A stretch of 64,000 bases of DNA from Blastocladiella emersonii ATCC 22665 (lineage: Eukaryota; Fungi; Blastocladiomycota): contig JANHCV010000001.1 in the NCBI GenBank assembly GCA_025594325.1, forward strand, positions 4,898,001-4,962,000, written 5' to 3'. A program made the translations under genes and the position numbers. This document shows, one piece after another, positions 20,296 to 33,313 of this stretch. The notes under the pieces were generated by a model. The model searched no databases and was not told the DNA's origin. It saw only the letters and a list, made by a program, of their open reading frames with translations. Each line of letters begins with the position of its first letter. Position 1 is the first letter of the stretch.

Positions 20296-22140
20296 TCACA
20301 CGCGCGCCGCGGCCTCGCGCGCGAACCGCGTCGCGTTCGGGCTCGCGGCCGCCGGGTGCCACGCGTACGGGCACGGCGCGTGCGCGGGGCCTTGCTGCCG
20401 CCGTGGTGGTTGCGTGAGCGCGAGCGGGACGGGCTCCGAGAGCATGGCCAGCACGTCGCGTAGCGGTGGGAGCTGGAGCTGCGGCAACCGGTGGTGGGGG
20501 TGGTGGTGCTGGTGGTGCTGCTGGTGCGCGAGCTGCGGCGGAATCGCGAACGAGCGCGGGGCCGTCGAGCACGCCGACAGCGGCGGGGTTGGCAGCGCGA
20601 GCGCGAGCGAGTGCGCTGGCGTGGGTGCGGAGCGGGCCTGGATCGAGAAGCGGAACCGGTCGCTCGACGCCGCGAGGGCCGAGGCCGGGGGCGAGAAGTC
20701 GACGGGCGCCGGCGGCGGCGGGAGCGCGATGGTGAACTCGAACGCGGACTTGGTCGCGGTCGCGGTCGCTGTCCTCGCGCGCGTCGTGGCGATGGTCAGC
20801 CGCTTGCGCTTGAGCCGCGCGGCGCGCGCGAGATGCAGCCCCGGGGGCGACGGGGAGCCGCCCGCCGATAGCGGCGAGGCGGGCGCGGACACGGACACGG
20901 ACACGGACGCGCGCGTCGGCAGGGTCGGCGACACGCCCGCGCGACCACCGGACAGCGGCGCGAGGGGCATGGGAAGCATGGTCAGGGGCGGCGAAACCGG
21001 CGCCGGATCGGCGGCCCGGTCGCCCGCGCGCGCGCCGCGCCTGCGAGGGTGATCAGCACGGCGCGCACGCTGGTCGTCGGGCAAAGCGCGAGTCTGATCG
21101 TGATCGCCGTCGCCCACCGCACTGTACGGTCCCAGCAGCAGCGCAGGTCGCGCCGCGCTGTTGCTTCTGCCGCGGTCGAGGTCGGCAGCGATGCGCAGGA
21201 CCTCGGTCGACGTGATGAGGTGAATGTGCCGGCCGGGGTACGCGGCGACGACCGCGGCCCACAGGGCGCACCGCGCGGCCGGCGTGGTCGCGCTGTCCTT
21301 GATGGCCTTGCTGACGCGCAGCCGCGTGGGCAGCGGGTGCAGCAGCGGGGCGCGCGCGGTCCCCGAGGCGACGGCCACGGCCAGGTCGTGCAGGACCAGG
21401 GCGCAGTCGTACATGCGGTACACCTGGGCGCGCGACAGGCTGAAGCGCGTGTCAAAGTAGGACTACAGGGGAGAGCGCGAGCGGGTGGGCGGATCAGCGA
21501 CGCGGATCGGATGCCGGTGGGAGGGGGCAGGGGAAGCGGGACGCGGTGCGCCACGGCGTGGGCCCGGAACGCGGTGCGCCCTTTGGATGGAGGCCGGCGG
21601 ATCCCCGATGCAGCAACGCCACCCACGCCATGTCTCGCCAAGCAGCCAACGCGAATGCCGCCCAACGCGCACGGTGGCGGCGTGCGCGCGCGTTGGCTGG
21701 CGAGCAGCCAATCATCACACATACACACACAGCGAAGAGAGAAGGAATGAGGAGAGAAGACGACGCACCTGCAGCGAGACGGCGCGCGGGTCGCCCGTGT
21801 GGCGGAACGGCTTGTCGGTGACGAGGCGGTGCAGGGCGAGGAGCCCGCGCTGGCGGGTGCCCTCGTCGTCGCTGTCGTCGGCGTCGAGACCGCTCGGATG
21901 AGGGCGGTGCGGGTGGTGGTGGTGGTCGGGCGAGCGCGGCGACGGCAGCAGCTGCGCCACCGCATCCGCATCCGCGGGGGGCGGCGAGGCCGACGCCGAC
22001 GCGCGGGTGAGGCGTAGGTAGGCGTCGACGGCGGCCTCGAGGCTCGCGAGGGCATCGGATGGCGCAGTGGCGGTGCTTGCCGGGGCGACGCCCGCTGTGG
22101 CCGGCGCGGAAACGAGGGCGGGGCGTGATTGGAGCGGCAT
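20296..22140 (-). CDS. Hypothetical protein, Pro/Ala-rich, basic motif RLKRKR
   Basis: Exons 22140-21769 and 21423-20296 joined by a 345-bp GT..AG intron in phase 0 (…AVSLQ|VYRMYDC…). Host-like codon use in the N-terminal half. No family recognised. Confidence 0.55.
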
Positions 22141-22267
22141 GGCGGTCGGTGGTGGCGGAGGGGTCGCCCTGGACGCCGACTATCGTGATGGAGCGAAGAC
22201 GTAGTCGATCGCGAGCGAGCGGCGCGGGCGGGATCGCCGATAGGGAGATCAAGCAGGCGTAGGAATT

Positions 22268-22300
22268 TCACCGCCCAGCGGTCCCCCAGCAGCTGCTGCC
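22268..22300 (+). repeat. Left terminal inverted repeat
   Basis: TCACCGCCCAGCGGTCCCCCAGCAGCTGCTGCC, the reverse complement of 30580-30612 with 2 mismatches. Confidence 0.9.
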
Positions 22301-22457
22301 GTGCCCTAAAAATTCATGCTGCCTGCGCCCCTGCGCCGCCGCCCGAACCGCACGGAACCGCACCGCGACCGCAATCCCGGTTTTGCCGCCTGGATCGCAC
22401 GCCCCCCTCCGCACGGGGGCCGCCTGTCGCGGCCCTCGAGCTCGCGTGACCTCGCTG

Positions 22458-24591
22458 ATGCAGCCGCGCCGCCGCCGCGCCGCCGCGGCCGCCCCCGCCG
22501 CCGCTTCCACGCCCCGAGACGACGACGGCGGCGACCGTGATGCAGCGCATAGAGCTCGACGCACGCGACTCGACGCAACGCAACGCTCCTCCTACCCGTA
22601 CCCGTACCCCACGTCCTGCTCCGCCCTCCCAGCGCCGCCGTCCCCGCCATGCCGCCTCGCCCGCTCCCCAAACCCGGTCCCAGCACCGGCAGGGCTCGAG
22701 ACCGTCCCGGCAACGCGGCTGCCTCTAGAAACCGCCGCAACGAGCCCGATACTGTACGATCCGGCCCCGTCCCACACGAATGCTTGGCTCTGCTCGTCAT
22801 GCTCACACTCGTCGCCGCACTCAGATCCCTCGGCTACCACCTCGTGCCCAAGATGTACTGGCTCTGCGGCGACTTTGGCACCGGTAAGCGCGGCACGGGT
22901 CCAGCGCCGTCGCTCCTCCAGCGCAACGACGCCATCCTGCAGCGGCGCGACCTGCACGCGAGCGCGCGGCGTGGTGACCTTCTCGCGGGCGTGTCTCCCG
23001 AGGAGCTCGCCAACCCGAACGACCCCGATTTCGTCCATGACCGCCGACTCCGTGTCCAAGGACGCGAGTATCTCGGGCTGGTGGGAGCAGTACGTCAAGG
23101 GTCTCGTGCCCGGCTACGTCCTCAAGCAGGCCGCCGCGGATCCGCCGCCGGCCAAGGTGTGGACGGTGCTCGAGCTGACGGAGCGCCTGCTCGGGCTGTC
23201 GTCCGACGTTGCGCGCGTGCTCACGGCGTTCCTGTCGCGCATCCACATCCCCGCCGACAACTTTTGCGTGTGCCCCGATCCGCCTGTCGCGCTGGACGGC
23301 GTGGTGCTTAGCACGCTCGATCGCCGTATCCCCAAGAACAAGGAGCCCTACACGGTCGTGACGGATCTCCCGTCCAAGTACACGCGCGCGTCGCGTGCGC
23401 CCGACCACTACCTGTCCACGCACCCCGAGTTCCACGCCATGTTCCAGGCGCTCGGCAAGCACGAGCTCGTGCTGTGGGAGCCGCTCGCCCAGCTCCAGGC
23501 CGAGGTCAAGCACCCGCTGCTCGACCTCCTCTTCCAGTTCCTGCACCACATCCCCGGCACCGGTCCCTTCTTCCTCGCTGAGCTTCCTCGAAGCATCCCG
23601 GCCCTCGCCCAGATCGCCTTCACGCTCGGCACGATCGTCAACCCGTGTCTGCAGCTGCTCCCGCGGGCGACGTGGTCCGAGGTGCGCAAGTTCGTTGACG
23701 ACAACGGCGGCCGCGCCCGTCCTGGCGGCGACGAGTTCGGCACCGAGTTCACCGCCGTGCTCGAGGAGCATGCGCCCATCATGCGTGACGTCGCGCTCCT
23801 GTCGCACGACCACGTCCCGCACCACGTCGCCGTCCAGTCGCTCTTCCGCACACCCGCCCGCTGCACCTCCGAGCAGTTCGACCAGCTGCGCCGCGACGTG
23901 TTCTGCAGCATCCTCGACGTCGCCGAGAAGACGGCCAGCACGGGCCAGGGGATCGACGGGCTCCCCTTGCCCGACGCTCCGCCCACCTCGAGCCAAGTCG
24001 ACGCCGCTGCCGCCGCCGCCGCCGCCGCCTCGCTCCGCGCCGACCTCGACAAGTTTTCGGCGGGTCCTCGCGCGTTCCACCCGAAGTGGTACGCCATCGC
24101 CCTGCACGAGATGCTCAGCGCCGCCGACGTGGAAGCCACCGCGCGGCTCGCACAGCCCGATGTGGGCAACCGCGACGCGCTCACCGAGACCGTCGCCATG
24201 CTGCGCCAGCTGCTCCCGCTCCTCCACCACGTCCTCGTCAACCTGCCGACCCCCGAGGAGGTCGTCGCCGCGTTCCAGCCGAACCGACCGCCGACCGAGC
24301 TGTCCGTCTCGCCGCTGGTCCTGCACGTCGTCAGCAAGCTCCACTCGATCCCGTACCGCTACGCCAACCTGCTCGACTCGCTCCCGAGCCTCGACGTGCG
24401 CACCAAGTTCCTGCCGCCCGCCGACCGGTACAACCCGCTGATCCAGCCCACGGCCGCGCGCCCCGAGCTCGAGATGAAGACGCTCGCCCGTGTCGTCGCC
24501 GCGAGTCGCGGCACCCGCGGGCCTGTCGTCAAGACGTGGACGTGGTACGGCGACAACGCGCAGCTCATGGACGCGCCGCCACCGCCACCGC

Positions 24592-24624
<33 letters not shown>

Positions 24625-25379
24625 CGCGCAACGGCCGCGCCGTCCGCATCGAGCCGTACACGCCGCCGCCCGGCCACGAGCACCACCCGCTCAAGGAGCT
24701 CGCGGCGAACGGCATGTGCTTCCCGAACCACGTGCCGATCCGCGTCACCCCCGTGCACGCCGGCGGCATGACCAAGGCCGACTCAGCGTGCTCCAAGGAG
24801 GCCAAGGACCCGGCCACGTGCGGCGCAGGCGTGCTCGCGTGGTGGTACCTCAGCTGCCGCCGGAGCATCGGGTTCTCCATCATGCGTCGCGCAGAAGCTC
24901 CGCACCAAGTGTACGCTACGCTGCTGAGCAGATTCCGCAAAATGCCGCCCATCCTCGTGTACGACAACGCGTGCAACGTCGCCGACTACTGCCTCGGCCG
25001 GTTCCCCGCGGCGTTCCGCGACACGCTGTTCCTCGTCGACGAGCTGCACATGCCCGGACACGTGAACTGCGCGCCGTCGTTCCGCGGCAAGCTGTACCGC
25101 GCGCTCGCTGACGTGCCGACCATCCTCCACGAGCAGAAGAACTCGCAGCTCGCTGGTCTCAAGTCGATCGCGCCCAAGGCCTCGTACCCGCTCTTCTCGA
25201 ACCTGCTTCTGCACCGCATCGCGATGCTGAACGAGCACGAGCTCGAGAAGGACCCCAAGTACTGGGACGCGTGCACCAGCTCGTTCACCGTCTCGCCCGT
25301 TGACGTGGAGTGGGAGGGAGGCGAGGGCGAGGTCGACGACGGTGATGATGATGAAATTGCCGATGTACATAGTGAATAA
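22458..25379 (+). CDS. KDZ/HMGXB3-like DDE transposase, possibly with a 1-nt frameshift near 23036
   Basis: Open frame 23037-25379 (780 aa). Motifs: CVCPDPPVALDGVVLS (candidate first D), CSKE…GAGVLAWWYLSCRRSIGFSIMRRAEAP, PILVYDNAC, FLVDELHMPGHVNC, LHEQKNSQL. The upstream part (probable intron 22754-22824, then a coding-like different frame 22825-23036) is uncertain, as is the 5' start. Confidence 0.8.
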
Positions 25380-25448
25380 GTCGTAGGCGTAGTAGTGGAA
25401 CTAGTATACAACTAGTTTTCCTCGTCAAACTTGAAGAATATGCTGGGT

Positions 25449-25484
25449 GAGCGGGCGAGCGGGCGAGCGGGCGAGCGAGCGAGC
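25449..25484 (+). repeat. (GAGCGGGC)3(GAGC)3 simple repeat downstream of the transposase
   Basis: Directly visible. Confidence 0.85.
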
Positions 25485-27170
25485 TGACCGAGGCTCGAGA
25501 CTTGGGCGTGAGCGGCTCGCGAAACTCGGCGGGTCGACCACCGTCTCGTCCCTCACGACTCGACGGTGAGAGCTACGACCCTGAAAGCCTGCACGAGCAT
25601 TTCAAGGCTATGCTTCAACATCCTCGTTGAGTCGAATCACAAAAATCACGAGTGGAACGGCGGCACGGGCCGTTCGAGTGAGATCGAGACGCGAGTCGCT
25701 GATCGCCACCTTCGTTTTCTCGCGCATCCTTGAGGCTCTGGCTCTCAACTCGGTGTTCAGTGAGAGCCACGGATGTGATCTAACTGGATTGATGGTTGGC
25801 GGTGGTACTATGCCCTTAATGAGCTGAGAGCACGCTTGGGAAGCCACCCGCACCAAGTTCTCGTCCGACAAGTTGTGCGCTTGCTTCGTCGCACGGCTAC
25901 GTGTTTCTGATGGTCAAATGACACTTTTTGTGCAACGACAGTGCTTTGCGATCTCTCACGCATTGTACGCGGTCGACCTGGGCCGCTAGTTGCCACCTGC
26001 GATTACTCAACGAGTTGACGTGATCCGTGAAGCTTCTCGGGCACTAATGAGTGACTGAAGGTTGTAGAAACTCGTGAAAGAGGTTGGCGCGGGCGCCCAG
26101 AGTACGGTGCACCTCAGGTACGCACGCGAGCGGAGGCGAGTGTAAGTTCACGCGTAGCTCACTGGGCGGCTCGAGCCCTGGTCTCTCCGCTCTGCATCAA
26201 GGTTTCTATGACCATATGACACTTTGGGTGCAGCGGCAGCGCTCCAACGCGTCTTGCGCGTCGGCGGGAGCGAGGCGAGCGAGCGACGTGTACCTTGCAC
26301 CACCTCCAGTACCCGCAGATTTCGTCACACGGAGCTCTTCTCTCGCATATAAGCTATTCAAACCTATAGTAGACGCTGTATGGGAAGCAGGAGGGCGTCT
26401 GGTGGGGGGTGTTGTCGCGGGTCGGACACGGTCCAGGAGCGAGCACTTGGGCCGCGCTGAACAGCTCGTCCGACCACCGACCCCACCCCGGCCCCGTTCC
26501 CCTCGGTCGATTGCTCCCAAACTTGGTACAGCGGCTATTGGGACCTATTGAAGCAACTTGGTGCCGTCGATGAGGGCCCCCGACCTCATAAATGTTCGTG
26601 GCCGGGTCGGTGCACCTGGGTCAGCACTTGCTGGTCGCTCAAGTGTCCGCCGACCACCATGGACTCGTCTTTCCGAATCTCGGCTCGTCCTCTTGGAAAA
26701 CTACGTTTGAGACCTGCCTGAACACGATGCCGCGCACAGTTTTCGCCCAAACCCGCCACCGTGCTCGGATCATGGTGAAGTCAGGTCAAGTTCGTTTAGC
26801 GTGGCCAAGACCGTTCCGGCCGCTCCCGCGTCCAGTTCTCCACCGATTTTGTCGACTCCGCCGCGCACAGTGGTGTAAGTGACCTGTCGAAATCGAATGG
26901 CAGTAGTCCCATGTCTACAGCTTGTCTGTAGCGGTAGATAGGGACGGAAAACCAAGTTTCCCGTATGAACGGTGTGAACGTCGCGTCCAGTTCTCGTCAG
27001 ATCCTCATCCAGGATCACTCGGGCTCTCGGAAACGCTCGGCCGCGCCTCAAACGGACATCTGTAGCACGCGCAAGAGCACATCGAGTGTCGCAGGTGCAC
27101 CCAAGTAGACTCATACGAGTGCTACAGGCTGCTGATCGTCAATCGGACGCGTCCATGGTGTCAAGACACC

Positions 27171-27178
27171 TATAAAAG
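27171..27178 (+). promoter_or_regulatory. Possible TATA box for the Q/H-rich cargo gene
   Basis: TATAAAAG about 340 bp upstream of the ATG at 27514. Motif match only. Confidence 0.3.
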
Positions 27179-27513
27179 ACATCCTGCGCGTCGAAACGTC
27201 CATTTTGAGCCGTTTGCAGCTACTACGCATCATGGACTTGGTTGACGAGCGACGCGTTGACAGCGCCAGGACCGTGCCAGAGCGAGATTACTGGTGTTTT
27301 ACGTCATTTAACATCATATAAATTACGTACCGTTAAGAGCGGAGCATCTGCAAGATCGTGGTCTCCATCTCGAAAGTGCGCGTGATCGTCAGCTGATGCG
27401 TTTCGTCAAGCTTCGAGTGTCTACGGACGGCGCCACCGTCGCTCCATCAAGTCGTTCGCACGACCTCGCCACCACCCTGACCCGATCCGACGACGGCCCA
27501 CACCATCACCATC

Positions 27514-28871
27514 ATGAACGAGCAACCTGCTGCACCGGGCGCCAACGGTCCTGCCCGTAACGGGGCCGAGCCCGTCGTCCCGCTCTCGCCCGAGGACGCC
27601 CGCCAGCTCACCGACGCGACCGCCGCTGACTGGTTTGAAGACCTCCTGCGCCGCCCGGCTGACTGGTTTGAAGACCTCCTGCGCCGCCCGACCCGCAACG
27701 CCAACAGCCGCAGCAGTCGATCCAGCACCAGGGCGCCGCGGGCAACAACCAGCAGCAGCAGGACCAGCAGCAGAACCAGTCGATCCAGCACCAGGGCGTC
27801 GCTGCGGGTGCCGCCGCCGCGGGTCCCGCGCCGCGCACGCGCCAGGGCGTCGCGGGCAACAACCACCAGCAGCAGAACCAGCAGCAGAACCAGCAGCAGA
27901 ACCAGTCGATCCCGCGCCAGGGCGCCGCGGGCAACAACCAGCAGCAGCAGCAGAACCAGCAGAAGCAGTCGATCCAGCCAGCACCAGGGCGTCGCTGCGG
28001 GCAACGCTGCCGCGGGTGCCGCTCCGCGCATGCATCAGGGCGTCGCGGGCAACAACCACCAGCAGCGGATCCAGCCGCAGCAGTCGAGCCAGCACCAGGG
28101 CGTCGCCGCGGGCCCGCAGCAGCGGCAGCAGCAGGAGATGGTCAACCACGCGGGCGCCGCGCCGCGCATGCCCCACGTCGCCGCGGGCGCCGGCTAGCAG
28201 CAGTACCCGCACCACACCACCGTGCAGCACCAGCAGCAGCAGCACCACCGTGCACCACCAGCAGCAGCAGCACCAGCAGCAGCACCAGCAGCAGCACCCG
28301 CACCAGCAGCAGCACCCGCACCACGCTGCCGCGGGCGCCGCCGCCGCCCAGCTCGCCAAACAGCAGCGTGCCATGGCGGAGGGCCAGATCATCGTGAGCC
28401 GCATGTCGGACGCGGAGAAGCGGGAGCTGATGGCCGTCTCCCCAAACGTGGTTCACCAATGGCGCTAGGTACGTTTCCACGAGACGGGCATGGATCCGCG
28501 TCGTCCCCTCACCAATCCTTCCGGGGTAGAAACACTATCATCTGATGCAGCACGGCTGCAGCGAGCAGGATCGCCAGACGCTCAACTCCCTCTACAACTC
28601 GGTGATCGCGTACGATTACCTTCAGAGCGTCTACCACGCGTGGCAGTCGCAGCAGCAGTCGCAGCTGCAGGCGCGGCAGCAGGCCCGGCAGCAGTCGCAC
28701 AGCGGCCACGGCGGCCATCCACAGCACCAGCAGCACCCCCATCAAGGCCACGGTGCTGGTCACGGCCTCGGCGGTTCAGCGCCGGCTGTCCAGCGATCCG
28801 GCTCGCACGACCGTCGTTCGCCGTCGTCCTTCAGCACCCGCACGGTTTCCTCGCCCTACTCGCGCAACTAG
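27514..28871 (+). pseudogene. Gln/His-rich, prion-like low-complexity cargo gene, disrupted
   Basis: ATG at 27514. The Q-rich frame is broken by frameshifts near 27705, 27977 and 28248 and by TAG codons at 28195 and 28466, which sit where CAG would fit. Probable intron 28469-28550 (GTACGT..CAG). Final stop at 28871. Confidence 0.65.
27625..27690 (+). repeat. Perfect 33-bp tandem duplication encoding ADWFEDLLRRP twice
   Basis: GCTGACTGGTTTGAAGACCTCCTGCGCCGCCCG at 27625-27657 and 27658-27690. Confidence 0.95.
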
Positions 28872-29157
28872 TCGTCGACATCACGTTGCGCCCCATCCCC
28901 TCCTAGTCTTCCTTTTTTCTCTTGTGGTCGAATGTAACGAGTTGAGTGTAAAGCGTTGGTCTGTGAGTTGTGGCGGTGGTCGGCGCCATCGATCTCAGCT
29001 CTCAAACAGCCTCAGCCCAGCTGGCGAGTCCACCCTCCCCGCCTGCCCATGTATCAAATCGAACATTTCTCGACCTGCACCTCGCTCGCCGTGACCTCCG
29101 CCGTCGCCGACATCGACTACTCGTCGCCGCCGCGCACTTATCCCGTCGCACGACTTA

Positions 29158-29537
29158 CTCGATCCTCGCGCAACGAACCCCGGCATCCACATGGCCGGCG
29201 TGCCGCGGCGGACACCGTCTTCCATCCGCCTGTGCAACGAGGCTTGCACGTTTGTGCGCCCCCGCTGCACCGCGGCCGACTCGACCCTCGCGCAGCGAAA
29301 CGCACCCCGGCATCCGCATGGCCGGTGAGCCGCGGCGTCTGCCGTCCTCCATCCGCCGGTGCATCGCTGCTGCCGCGTTCGTGCTTTCCCCGCTGCACCG
29401 TGGCGGACTCGTTCGTCAATTCGCAGCTGCACGCGGCGGACACGCCCGTCCATCCGCCGGCGTACTCGGTCGCCCACGAGCCGGTGCTTTGTGGCTGCCA
29501 CGGCAACACCACAACCTGCCACGTTTTTCCATCCGCC
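29158..29537 (+). repeat. Diverged ~125-bp direct repeats plus four CCATCCGCC motifs inside the transposon
   Basis: Units 29158-29279 and 29280-29407 share CTCGAyCCTCGCGCArCGAA, CCCCGGCATCCrCATGGCCGG and CCCCGCTGCACCG. CCATCCGCC occurs at 29222, 29349, 29450 and 29529. Confidence 0.8.
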
Positions 29538-30579
29538 GGCTGACCATCCCCACCGCCCGGGCGACCGCCTCGTGCGCACGGATCTACGGCCCGCACCGTG
29601 ACGTTCCGTTGCTGGACGCGTTGCCAGCAGCCCCTCTATCGTCCACGCGATGGTGGAGGCGGATCGGCAAGTCGCCCGCCATCTCTACGTTCGCGAGTCG
29701 TGGCGCTCTCCACACCGCGTACGCATGTTGCTACTCTATGTCGCGTCCACGGTCGTCCGAGCGCTGGTCTTGCTCTCAGTCCGTCGGCAGCGACCTGTCG
29801 TCACAGTGGGCTTATCCTGCATCTTCCCCTTGAACGCCGGCCACGAACGCTGGTCAACTCAGTCGCCGATGCACGTTCACGGACCAGCTCCTTTGCGCGC
29901 GCGGTGCGAGGCGACGTCGAGCGACGAGAACCTCGCCGACTTGCTTACACGACGGACGCCAGAGACTTGGTCGTCGTCTCTCATCAAGCTCGCCGAGCTG
30001 CGCGAGTTTTTCGCCGCTCATTGAACTTTGATGTGGTCGACGCGACAGCGACCATCACCTTGAGCCTGTCTCTCAATCATCAAGGAGCAAAGTTTCCGCA
30101 AGTTCGTTTCGCTGGCCGCTGCCCGATGTATCGCCCTCTCACGGCTTATGAACGAGGCCATCGTTGCGGACGTTCTCAGCGGACTTGCGAAGCAGAGTCG
30201 CTCGCAGCGGACTCCGCGGAGACGGCGTGGAACGGGTCGGCAGAGTCGCGCAGCACTCAACCCCCCTGACCATGATCGTGCGACCGCACAAACACTGTAA
30301 CGTCGAGGAACAGCAGTCGTCAGCGTCAAGTGCTGTGCGTGGAAGTTCACAAGTGGGGGTGTATGGAGTGGGCCTCGCGGGAGAGGACGTGAGCGACGCA
30401 GAGTCGCTGCGAAAAACGCTAAGTCAAGAGAACGCACACCCGTGCGTCACGATCCACGCCCACGTGCCTTCGATCGTGACGAACCATGATGCAATGTGGC
30501 GCGCGGCGTGGGCGGCGAGTCGGTTCCCAAAATGGCAACGGGTCAGGGGGGGCATGCTGAGTGCGTTTTTTTGGGGGCT

Positions 30580-30612
30580 GGCAGCAGCTGCTGAGGGACC
30601 ACTGGGCGGTGA
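30580..30612 (-). repeat. Right terminal inverted repeat
   Basis: GGCAGCAGCTGCTGAGGGACCACTGGGCGGTGA, followed by AATT. Confidence 0.9.
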
Positions 30613-30771
30613 AATTTGGGACGGCTGCTGGCGGACCGTCGGACGGTCTGATCTCGATGTAGGATCGCCAGCCGTGGGGGGGCCGGTTGAGTTTTGAGCG
30701 ATGCTGGGCGGGCGCGAGGTGGCCGTAACCGATCGTGAGCGGAGCCACTCGCCGCCGTCCCCTGCATTTGC

Positions 30772-30818
30772 GCCCGCTCGCCTGCCCGCTCGCCTGCCCG
30801 CTCGCCTGCCCGCTCGCC
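30772..30818 (+). repeat. (GCCCGCTCGCCT) x ~3.9 tandem repeat
   Basis: Directly visible 12-bp unit. Confidence 0.9.
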
Positions 30819-31922
30819 ACCGCGGGGCATCGAGACCCCCGTGCTGGCTCACGTCACGCTGCATGATGGGCGCACGCCCAGCTGCAGGGCAGCTGCAGGG
30901 CCCATGCGTGCGCAGAACTCACACGCTCGCCATGTCGCAATCTCGACGTCGGACGCGGCTGCCACGCCGCGTTGAGCCGGCAGCATGCGTGTCGAGGAGT
31001 GGAGGTGTCGCGGATTGGAGTGGCACGGCACCGTGTTCGGCAATCCCCATCTACTCGAGATCACCGGCTCGTCGCGATGACTGATCATGACTGACGTCGC
31101 CGCCTCGTGTGCGCAAATGGAGGGCTCTGTCCGCAGCCAAAACCAAAACGCGTCGGACAGCGCGCCGCGCCGTGTCGCACGACGGTTTGCATCGACGCGG
31201 CTCACCGTGCCCGAGATTTTGGGTGTCGGTGGCGCAGTGCGGACAGGGCCGGGCGAGTTGGGGGCATGGCGGTGCGGGCGCGGGCTGCAGGACGTGTCCG
31301 CACACGCTCTCTCGCGGTTTTCATCGTTCCCGAAGCATCCGAAGCGCGCACTCTACTCTCTCTCTTGAGGAGCTTTCGTTGCTGCAGCGGCGTTGCACCC
31401 GCGACGCGTCTCGCACATCCGCGCTCTCGCGCACGTGAGCCGGGTCGCGCACGTGACGCGGCGCGGCTCGCGTGTGGGTTTTTTTCTGGGCCGTTGCTCT
31501 TTCCTTTCCGGCAGTCGTCGGCCGCCACCGCCGTCCACGTCGCGCTCATCACCGCCCCCACGCTCCCTGGACGGCGGCCCTACATTGCCCCGACGCATCG
31601 ACACTGCATGCATTGCACTTGAGCCGACCCGCTCTCACCGAAAACCCCCACGGAACCCGGCGCGAACGAAGCAGCGACTCTGCGCGCGCACACACGCCAC
31701 ACGTCACGCCCGCGCACTGCCTGAAATAGGTCCGCACGCACGCTCTGGGGGCTCGGCGACGCGGCGGCACCGTGTGGTCCTGGTGCGGCCGCACCCGGCA
31801 GGCGCACGGACGGCTGCTGCTGCTGTGCCGCCGCTGCCTCGCCCTCATCCGGATCCGTGTCGCGGTCGCTGACGCGGCGCGCGCTGGCCAGCCGTAGTCT
31901 ACCCGTACCACATCACACCGCC

Positions 31923-33313
31923 ATGAGCTTCTTCTTCAAGTCCAGCAAGGCCAAGTCGCCCGCCGACACGGTGCGCGCCGCGCGCGAGGCCGTGCTGCGG
32001 CTCGACGGCGAGCGCAGGCCCGGCGACAAGGTACTACTGCGTACGCTTTCTGTGTGTCCCGCGAGTCGGAACTGACGCGGCACTCGCTTGTGTGTAGACG
32101 CCCGAGGAAATCTCCAAACTCATCCTGCAGATCAAAGTGTATCTGACGGGGGACGGCGGTGCGTGCGCTGCTGCTGCATCTACCGCCTGCACGCGCATGG
32201 GCGCTCACACACGCCCGGATCCGACCGCGTAGAGACGGAGCCGACGCCCGAGACCATCTCGGCGCTGGCGCAGGAGATCTACAACCAGGACCTGCTGGCG
32301 CTGTTCATCACGCACCTGCAGCGGTTCGAGTTCGAGGCGAAAAAGGACGTGGTGTTTGTCGTCAACACGCTGCTGCGGCGGCAGATCGGGTCGCGCCAGC
32401 CGACGGTCGAGTACTTTTCGGTGCGCGAGCCGCTGCTCGTGACGCTGATCCAGGGGTACGAGAGCCCCGAGATCGCGCTCAACTGCGGCATGATGGTCCG
32501 CGAGTGCGCGCGGTACGAGCCCCTGGCCAAGAGCGTGCTGCACCACGCCGTGTTCTGGAACTTTTTCAACTACGTCGAGTCGACCACGTTTGACACGGCG
32601 AGCGACGCGTTTGCCACGTTCAAGGACCTGCTCATCAAGCACAAGGAGATGGTCGCGCAGTTCCTCGACGCCAACTACGACGCCTTCTTCGCCCGGTACA
32701 CGAACCTGCTCAACTCCAACAACTACGTGACCAAGCGCCAGTCGCTCAAGCTGCTCGGCGAGCTGCTCCTCGACCGCGCCAACTTCTCGGTCATGACCCG
32801 GTACATTGCGTCGGCCGACAACCTCAAGCTCATGATGAACCTGCTGCGCGACAAGTCCCGCAATATCCAGTTCGAGGCGTTCCACGTCTTCAAGGTGTTT
32901 GTCGCCAACCCGAAAAAGGTCAAGCCCGTCGCCGACATCCTCATCAAGAACCGCGAGAAGCTGCTCAGCTACCTCGCGAGCTTCCACAACGACAAGACGG
33001 GTACGCTCTCTCTCTCTCTTTCGCGTTTGCCGTCGTGCTTGTCACTCACCGCGCGCGTGCGAGTGTAGACGACGACCTGTTCAACGACGAGAAGCAGTTC
33101 CTGATCCGGCAAATCAGCGACATGCCCGCCACCACGAGCTCGCCCGTCACGCCCGCCGCGGGATCCAGTCCAGCAGGAGGCACCGCCGGCACCCCACCGG
33201 GCGCCTCGGCCAGCACGCCCGCACTCAACGCCGACGCGTCGTCACTCGCTGCGGCAGCGGCCGCGGGCAGCAGTAGCGCAGACCAGGCGTTGCCAACCGC
33301 CGGGTCCGCGTAG
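31923..33313 (+). CDS. HYM1: Mo25/Hym1/CAB39 scaffold protein (~393 aa)
   Basis: join(31923..32030,32098..32158,32233..33000,33069..33313). [73 protein letters not shown]. Confidence 0.97.

Follow-up and report, generated by a model that had tools for sequence, protein, structure and literature searches.

The stretch of DNA analyzed here, hereafter the window, comprises 64,000 nt of the genome of the blastocladiomycete fungus Blastocladiella emersonii ATCC 22665 (G000:C1:4898001-4962000), the assembly of which contains 32.65 Mb in 21 contigs with a guanine-plus-cytosine (GC) content of 68%. At positions 22239-30661 the window harbors an element of 8423 bp, delimited by comparison of two copies, that is bordered by long terminal inverted repeats (TIRs) and 8-bp target-site duplications (TSDs). 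From left to right, the element carries the gene of a putative KDZ-type transposase and, beyond it, 5.2 kb of passenger DNA (25380-30567), mostly noncoding, with one coding-like stretch rich in glutamine and histidine.

A previous sequence-only reading of the window had placed the ends of the element at 22264 and 30616 on the basis of two 33-bp inverted repeats and an adjoining AATT. A sequence check and a repeat search confirmed that the repeats are present as described, at 22268-22300 and 30580-30612, with 31 of the 33 positions matching and with AATT next to each of them (22264-22267 and 30613-30616). The longest inverted repeat that the repeat search detected between 21.5 and 31.5 kb was formed by 22264-22312 and 30568-30616 (49 nt, 88% complementary), and a 19-nt core of the TIR was found within the window at just these two places.

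The search of the genome with either end of the element revealed exactly one further copy, in contig 21 (G000:C21:970960-979267, 8308 bp), which showed 99.1-99.6% identity to positions 22252-30662 of the window by BLAST. The identity between the contig-21 copy and the window continued outward for 12 nt past the left AATT and for 46 nt past the right one, and the sequence shared by the two copies extended from 22239 to 30661 when a 19-nt deletion in the left end of the window copy was allowed for. In a base-by-base comparison, the identity between the copies ended on the right with GATCTCGATGTA, and its left limit, once the 19-nt deletion was taken into account, was GATAGGGAGATC. The real ends are located, therefore, 25 nt (left) and 45 nt (right) outside those proposed earlier. 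Beyond the shared sequence the two loci were unrelated, except that each copy is bordered on both sides by a perfect direct repeat of 8 bp. In the window this left TSD is GGATCGCC (22231-22238), and the identical 8-mer constitutes the right TSD (30662-30669); the next outer base differs on both sides, so that the duplication is exactly 8 bp long. The contig-21 copy is flanked on both sides by GTGAGCGG, a perfect duplication that differs from that of the window. The alignment of the flanks, which had been suggested as a check, thus fixed the limits of the TIRs and the length of the TSD.

The left TIR of the window copy (22239-22312, plus strand) has 74 nt, and the right TIR (30568-30661, minus strand) has 94 nt and is the same in both copies. 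As judged from the alignment of the ends and from BLAST, the left TIR lacks after position 22251 a 19-nt segment that is present in the contig-21 copy and in the right TIR, and the deletion has AGC on either side. The full left end of the contig-21 copy aligned to the right ends over 87 nt with 83% identity (BLAST). The repeat recognized earlier corresponds to the inner part of the left TIR (22264-22312), and the outer 25 and 45 nt beyond the AATT also form an inverted repeat. Because the identity between the copies continues past the AATT on both sides, and because the same AATT is found at both loci, AATT belongs to the sequence of the element: it lies inside the TIR and is not a target duplication.

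Genome-wide searches with the inner part of the TIR, with its outer part and with the terminal 26-nt pattern (up to 3 mismatches) retrieved the two copies only, with no solo ends and no short or miniature derivatives; the terminal 26-mer itself was found in the whole genome, with up to 3 mismatches, at the two right ends only. The genome-wide TIR search that the sequence-only reading had proposed for the element as a transposon yielded, hence, one other copy with the same ends, at a different locus and with a different TSD. Over 8.4 kb, 31 substitutions (0.37%) and 7 indels were counted between the two copies; among the indels are the 19-nt TIR deletion, a 21-nt indel of proline codons in the transposase gene and a 102-nt indel in the Gln-rich repeats. 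The divergence of 0.37% points to a recent event. The copies are polymorphic in length at 24574-24594, a run of seven proline codons of the transposase, and at 27763-27864, the 102-nt block of the Gln-rich repeats, which points to replication slippage since the copies separated. The substitutions are unevenly distributed, with 4 in the 3.0-kb transposase open reading frame (ORF; 22383-25379) and 27 in the other 5.4 kb, small numbers in which selection and mutational heterogeneity are inseparable; three of the four substitutions in the transposase ORF alter an amino acid in the conserved core. A C-to-T bias of the kind left by repeat-induced point mutation was also considered, but it was not evident from the 19 transitions and 12 transversions, which showed no directional excess.

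The mechanically determined transposase ORF, 22383-25379, comprises 998 codons. Its 3' part, 23034-25379 (plus strand), is the transposase core frame, which contains an in-frame ATG at 23037, is conserved from residue 227 (23061) onward and shows a strong coding periodicity with a GC content at third codon positions (GC3) of ~0.9, host genes having values of ~0.4-0.7/0.35-0.65/0.95 at the three codon positions. In the tblastn searches with 11 relatives, every match fell in this core frame. The codon-position GC of ~22734-23032 (~0.7/0.45/0.85) fits, however, a different frame rather than that of the long ORF, and because it supports this other frame upstream, the part of the long ORF before 23031 is a spurious extension. 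The probable N-terminal part of the transposase, 22649-23032 (plus strand), would be encoded in this second frame, which is open from 22553 and has ATG codons at 22649 and 22853; the first 60 residues of the NCBI model for the sister copy, H9P43_007270, are also in the N-terminal frame. A 1-nt frame break at 23033 (plus strand), located in a CCCC/TTT context and common to both copies, separates the two frames, as indicated by reading of the sequence and by the phase switch in codon-position GC. The NCBI model spans the break with a 28-nt GT..AG "intron" (23033-23060), but such an intron is probably too short to be genuine, and the sequence points instead to a 1-nt frame break in the CCCC/TTT run; the break could be either a true mutation or an assembly (consensus) error. 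The previous claim that frameshifts and premature stops cluster inside the element holds, thus, for the break near 23033 and for at least three frame changes in the Gln-rich stretch described below, but not for the transposase core, which is a single open frame.

The CxC4 region that precedes the core in the relatives of the window protein gave no Pfam match here, and tblastn with the CxC4 segments of the relatives produced weak matches only, whatever the frame. A by-eye comparison with the relative from Catenaria revealed that, in the supported frame, the CxC4 stretch is shorter than that of the relatives, one cysteine of a CxxC pair being kept and the second pair being absent. The upstream "CPRC...C" stretch of the long ORF was considered as a CxC4 remnant and discarded, since codon-position GC shows that the other frame is the coding one.

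A word-index protein search with the window protein retrieved only the protein of the sister copy, H9P43_007270. A profile built from the window protein and its paralog in the same genome was then compared with 1.84 billion representative sequences and matched 2033 proteins at E ≤ 1e-3, all of them sharing the C-terminal ~190 residues. When 43 full-length relatives were scanned with Pfam, CxC4 (PF18717) was recognized in 28, KDZ (PF18758) in 10 (E ≤ 1e-3, best 1.6e-8) and CxC5 in one, and no other family was found. Likewise, each of the ten best Pfam-carrying matches in the ESM Atlas belonged to a family or clan of the KDZ or CxC type. Among the named relatives, the nearest come from Allomyces macrogynus, Catenaria anguillulae and the chytrid Globomyces; the others are metagenomic. 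PF18717 may also be the cluster of the domesticated HMGXB3, which would fit the UniRef designation "HMG domain-containing protein" of the Allomyces and Catenaria relatives. A six-frame search of the genome with PF18758 found nothing, but its control was uninformative.

The paralog, H9P43_001428 (G000:C1:3785839-3789102, minus strand), is the only one in the genome and consists of an intact, single-copy frame of 1087 codons. It shares 43% identity with the window protein in the catalytic domain, over the C-terminal 195 residues, and is collinear with it from the CxC4 region on. H9P43_001428 scored 28.8 bits with CxC4, above the curated cutoff of 26.9, and it matched KDZ (PF18758) at E 0.019 through residues that align with residues 838-902 of the window protein; the core cysteine motif is retained. 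No credible inverted repeats were found around this gene within 7-10 kb, and H9P43_001428 may be an immobile or domesticated transposase.

The C-terminal part of the window protein contains a predicted RNase H-like (DDE-type) catalytic domain (24594-25277, plus strand; ORF residues ~738-965), recognized from an AlphaFold model, a structural search and conserved residues. Residues 738-998 were modeled with a predicted local distance difference test (pLDDT) score of 82. In an exhaustive VIA-align search, all of the 28 top matches were DDE transposases or retroviral-type integrases (Z 4.8-7.3), including ISCth4 (the best match), foamy virus integrase, TnsB, Mu, Tn5, Hermes (Z 5.2), Transib and piggyBac. 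We assume that ISCth4 is a member of IS256, which is presumably the bacterial kin of Mutator. The consistency of these matches, in spite of their modest Z values, supports an RNase H-like core in the model. Nine residues invariant among the relatives are kept in the window protein (C803, K805, E838, D861, C864, D886, H889, H893 and C896), as is the near-invariant E917 (41 of 43 relatives). Candidate acidic residues for the catalytic triad are the invariant E838, D861 and D886 and the near-invariant E917, all four of which are present here. In contrast, the core motif C-x2-H/C-x2-C reads Y-x2-C-x2-S in the window protein, replacing two cysteines, C822 and C828, that are present in 42 and 39, respectively, of the 43 sequences.

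The passenger DNA begins with a low-GC segment of 1.6 kb (25485-27080, 58% GC) that showed neither coding periodicity nor Pfam matches. Its single occurrence outside the element is G000:C2:1213209-1214796, with 87.6% identity and sharp borders of homology, and the segment may be a remnant or a piece of captured DNA. Its neighbor on contig 2 is a long terminal repeat (LTR) retrotransposon of the Ty3/Gypsy chromovirus type (G000:C2:1217991-1222963, plus strand), the gag ORF of which is ~3 kb away and which has apparently intact frames for gag, with a zinc knuckle, and for pol, with protease, reverse transcriptase, RNase H, integrase and chromodomain. The segment was considered as an LTR of this neighbor and rejected, because it is present only once there.

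The candidate cargo gene of the element (27514-28871, plus strand) is composed of Gln/His-rich repeat modules and shows a coding-like GC periodicity with several frame changes. The coding phase shifts at ~27690, ~27985 and ~28205 without a nonperiodic gap, and it shifts again across a candidate GT..AG intron of 103 nt (28448-28550). The stretch contains tandem repeats, differs in length by 102 nt between the copies, and part of its periodicity merely reflects triplet repeats of the CAG type. Because the frame changes are identical in both copies, they are older than the last transposition. The Pfam scan of ten cargo ORFs gave sub-threshold, low-complexity matches only; a protein search with 28545-28868 found no paralog in the same genome, and a word search with the last nonrepetitive exon retrieved no protein. 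The scanned cargo ORFs included no TET/JBP gene, and a search of the same genome for TET/JBP also found nothing, although its control was uninformative. Accordingly, the presence of a cargo gene, as previously proposed, stands as far as the several kilobases of nontransposase DNA are concerned, but the candidate gene itself has no domain, relatives or paralog and carries at least three frame changes in both copies. The right arm (28872-30567) is apparently noncoding, with no coding periodicity and no Pfam match for its ORFs, and contains four boxes of the 10-mer TCCATCCGCC, at 29221, 29348, 29449 and 29528, spaced ~80-130 nt apart. No Rfam family was detected in 22000-31000.

Both flanks of the window element are single-copy in the assembly, and there is, thus, no allelic contig and no empty site in this assembly. 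When the flanks were joined in silico, no convincing host reading frame was observed across either insertion site, and the intergenic position that had been assigned to the element is plausible. The ORFs to its left (20296-22271, minus strand) gave no Pfam match; the first recognizable host gene to its right, ~1.4 kb away, is a Mo25-like gene (32088-33065, plus strand; Pfam E 1e-118).

The structure delimited here was compared with those of known elements. Fish Zisupton (Bohne et al. 2012, cited in PMC12730594) has, as does the window element, TIRs and an 8-bp TSD, and both have a large transposase, of ~800-1000 residues, the family of which bears a CxC4 cluster N-terminal to the KDZ core; the KDZ, CxC4 and SWIM combination has been termed the canonical Zisupton architecture (PMC11343200). 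Unlike Zisupton, the window copy has a CxC4 region and a KDZ core that Pfam does not detect, a search for a SWIM domain in it gave none, and two core cysteines are replaced. The host is different as well, a blastocladiomycete, a phylum for which the literature located records only KDZ cores, in Allomyces (PMC5751038). An 8-bp TSD and long TIRs are also found in the Dileera element Zisupton-1_PGr (PMC12730594) and in KDZ1, KDZ2 and KDZ3 of Cryptococcus neoformans (PMC11343200), the TIRs of KDZ1 having 236 bp, and these elements resemble that of the window in having 9-11 kb, cargo genes and noncoding DNA, and a low copy number. The mobile KDZ elements described from Cryptococcus measure 6.4-10.9 kb and possess, besides 8-bp TSDs and extra genes, TIRs that reach 236 bp (PMC11343200). 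Nevertheless, CxC1 is the cluster of KDZ2 and KDZ3, and the KDZ proteins of Cryptococcus group with Dileera, whereas the family of the window element carries CxC4; moreover, the Dileera elements of rusts carry TET/JBP genes, and none was found here. KDZx1, a Zisupton element of Cryptococcus deneoformans (6.4 kb, two ORFs; PMC11343200), is similar in having several kilobases and an extra ORF of unknown function, but it has no detectable TIRs, in contrast to the ~90-bp TIRs of the window element. Kyakuja elements, which belong to the same transposase superfamily, have a 7-bp TSD, CA..TG termini and no TIRs (PMC12730594), whereas the window element has an 8-bp TSD, long TIRs and the ends GATAGG...ATGTA. 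Within the same genome, the locus of H9P43_001428 differs from the window element in its lack of detected TIRs, in a CxC4 domain above the Pfam cutoff and in its conserved core cysteine motif. Once its ends are corrected, the window element agrees with the Zisupton/Dileera pattern in all structural features, and it does not fit Kyakuja, hAT or Mutator-like elements (MULEs).

Taken together, these results indicate that 22239-30661 is very probably one of two copies, in B. emersonii, of a class II (cut-and-paste) KDZ transposon of the CxC4/Zisupton-like branch. The boundaries at the tips of the TIRs, the locus-specific 8-bp TSDs and the single-copy flanks constitute the signature of a cut-and-paste insertion, and the second copy with its own TSD and the KDZ/CxC4 relatives bear out the earlier description of a structurally complete TIR transposon with a KDZ-group transposase. 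By analogy with DDE transposases, the transposase, through its RNase H-like core, would bind the ~90-bp imperfect TIRs, excise the element and insert it at a staggered 8-bp cut, the repair of which would leave the 8-bp direct repeats. By the same analogy, the element would have been moved by its own protein, and the chemistry of transposition would be that of the DDE enzymes. Several observations weigh against this interpretation. The window protein itself, whether searched whole or in three pieces, matched no Pfam KDZ or CxC family, even at E ≤ 10 in the case of its C-terminal 299 residues, and its membership in the KDZ group rests, therefore, on transitive homology. No SWIM domain was found in it or in the 43 relatives scanned. 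A Foldseek search of the PDB with the core model gave nothing significant, and the structural Z values, which do not exceed 7.3, are within a range that is possibly generic. The outermost 6 nt of the ends match poorly (GATAGG versus TACATC), and the transposase shows wear in the frame break near 23033 and in the replacement of C822 by Y and of C828 by S. With two copies and no empty site, activity is deduced from a single duplication event. Finally, the assignment of the element to Zisupton rather than to Dileera is tentative.

The alternative explanations fare much worse where they concern the nature and the ends of the element. In the sequence-only reading the element extended from 22264 to 30616, AATT being a 4-bp TSD or the tip of a 37-bp TIR, and the element would represent a KDZ family distinct from Zisupton. 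A palindromic 4-mer adjoining each of the 33-bp repeats does resemble a TSD if seen alone, but the second copy is identical well past it on both sides and has the same AATT at its own locus, the sequence beyond it is itself inverted-repeat, and true, locus-specific 8-bp duplications are found at the outer ends; this explanation is thus extremely improbable, and the correct ends give the 8-bp TSD and long TIRs known from Zisupton and Dileera (PMC12730594; PMC11343200) instead of a new family with an AATT target. We give no more credit to the view that an 8.4-kb block was copied by segmental duplication or by gene conversion, the inverted repeats being incidental: the existence of only two copies, without an empty site and without short derivatives sharing the ends, would agree with such an event, but the block starts and stops precisely at the tips of ~90-bp inverted repeats, is bracketed in each copy by its own perfect 8-bp direct repeat and encodes a homolog of the transposases of a family known for 8-bp TSDs. 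An element of another superfamily with a TSD of 8-9 bp, either hAT (8 bp) or Mutator-like (long TIRs and 9-11 bp), is slightly less remote but still very unlikely. An 8-bp TSD is also a hallmark of hAT, MULEs typically have long TIRs, ISCth4 was the top structural match, and some Zisupton proteins bear a SWIM finger of the MuDR type (PMC11343200). However, neither the window protein nor its 43 relatives contain a hAT, MULE or Transposase_mut Pfam domain, the relatives having KDZ and CxC4 instead; the neighbors in the ESM Atlas all belong to KDZ or CxC families; and the match to Hermes was weaker than those to integrases and to Mu-type proteins. Of the features of hAT, which also include transposase domains (dimerization domain) and short TIRs, the TSD length alone fits the window element, and among those of Mutator-like elements the TSD has 8 bp rather than 9-11, the resemblance being restricted to the long TIRs and to the generic structural match with ISCth4.

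A more serious possibility, although not the one that we favor, is that the KDZ transposon is no longer autonomous, its transposase being defective and its last move having taken place before the damage or in trans. The 1-nt frame break is present in both copies, the CxC4 region is unrecognizable, the changes C822Y and C828S alter a motif that 39-42 of the 43 relatives retain, the left TIR of the window copy is 19 nt short, and the copy number has stayed at two. On the other hand, none of the nine invariant core residues has been lost, nor has the near-invariant E917; a frame of ~780 codons with a host-like GC3 persists, which chance would very rarely produce at 68% GC, and offers an ATG (23037) after the break; the break itself falls within a homopolymer context and may reflect an assembly error; and no similar TIRs are found near the sole other member of the family in the genome, so that no helper is evident. 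In the interpretation favored here, too, the present-day autonomy of the element is doubtful because of the 19-nt loss from the left TIR of the window copy and because of the frame break, the unrecognizable CxC4 region and the replacement of the two near-invariant cysteines, which both copies share.

A further and rather unlikely conjecture is that the element belongs to a Zisupton-like lineage of zoosporic fungi (Blastocladiomycota and Chytridiomycota), the latest mobile member of which moved without a recognizable CxC4 DNA-binding cluster and without two near-invariant cysteines of the core motif. If so, either these zinc-ligand positions would be dispensable for KDZ transposition or a resident paralog of 43% identity could mobilize a foreign element in trans.

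The analysis of 22239-30661 defines precisely the ends, the TIRs and the TSD of a KDZ element from the Blastocladiomycota. With it, a spurious new family based on the misreading of AATT as a target site is avoided, and it allows the two models annotated as "hypothetical protein" to be relabeled as transposase genes, i.e. H9P43_007270 in the sister copy and the equivalent gene at 22649-25379 in the window. The element fits the published Zisupton pattern and leaves the knowledge of the superfamily unchanged; the result is a useful annotation rather than a new family. For B. emersonii, the near-identical pair of copies demonstrates a recent move of at least one class II element within a compact genome of 68% GC.

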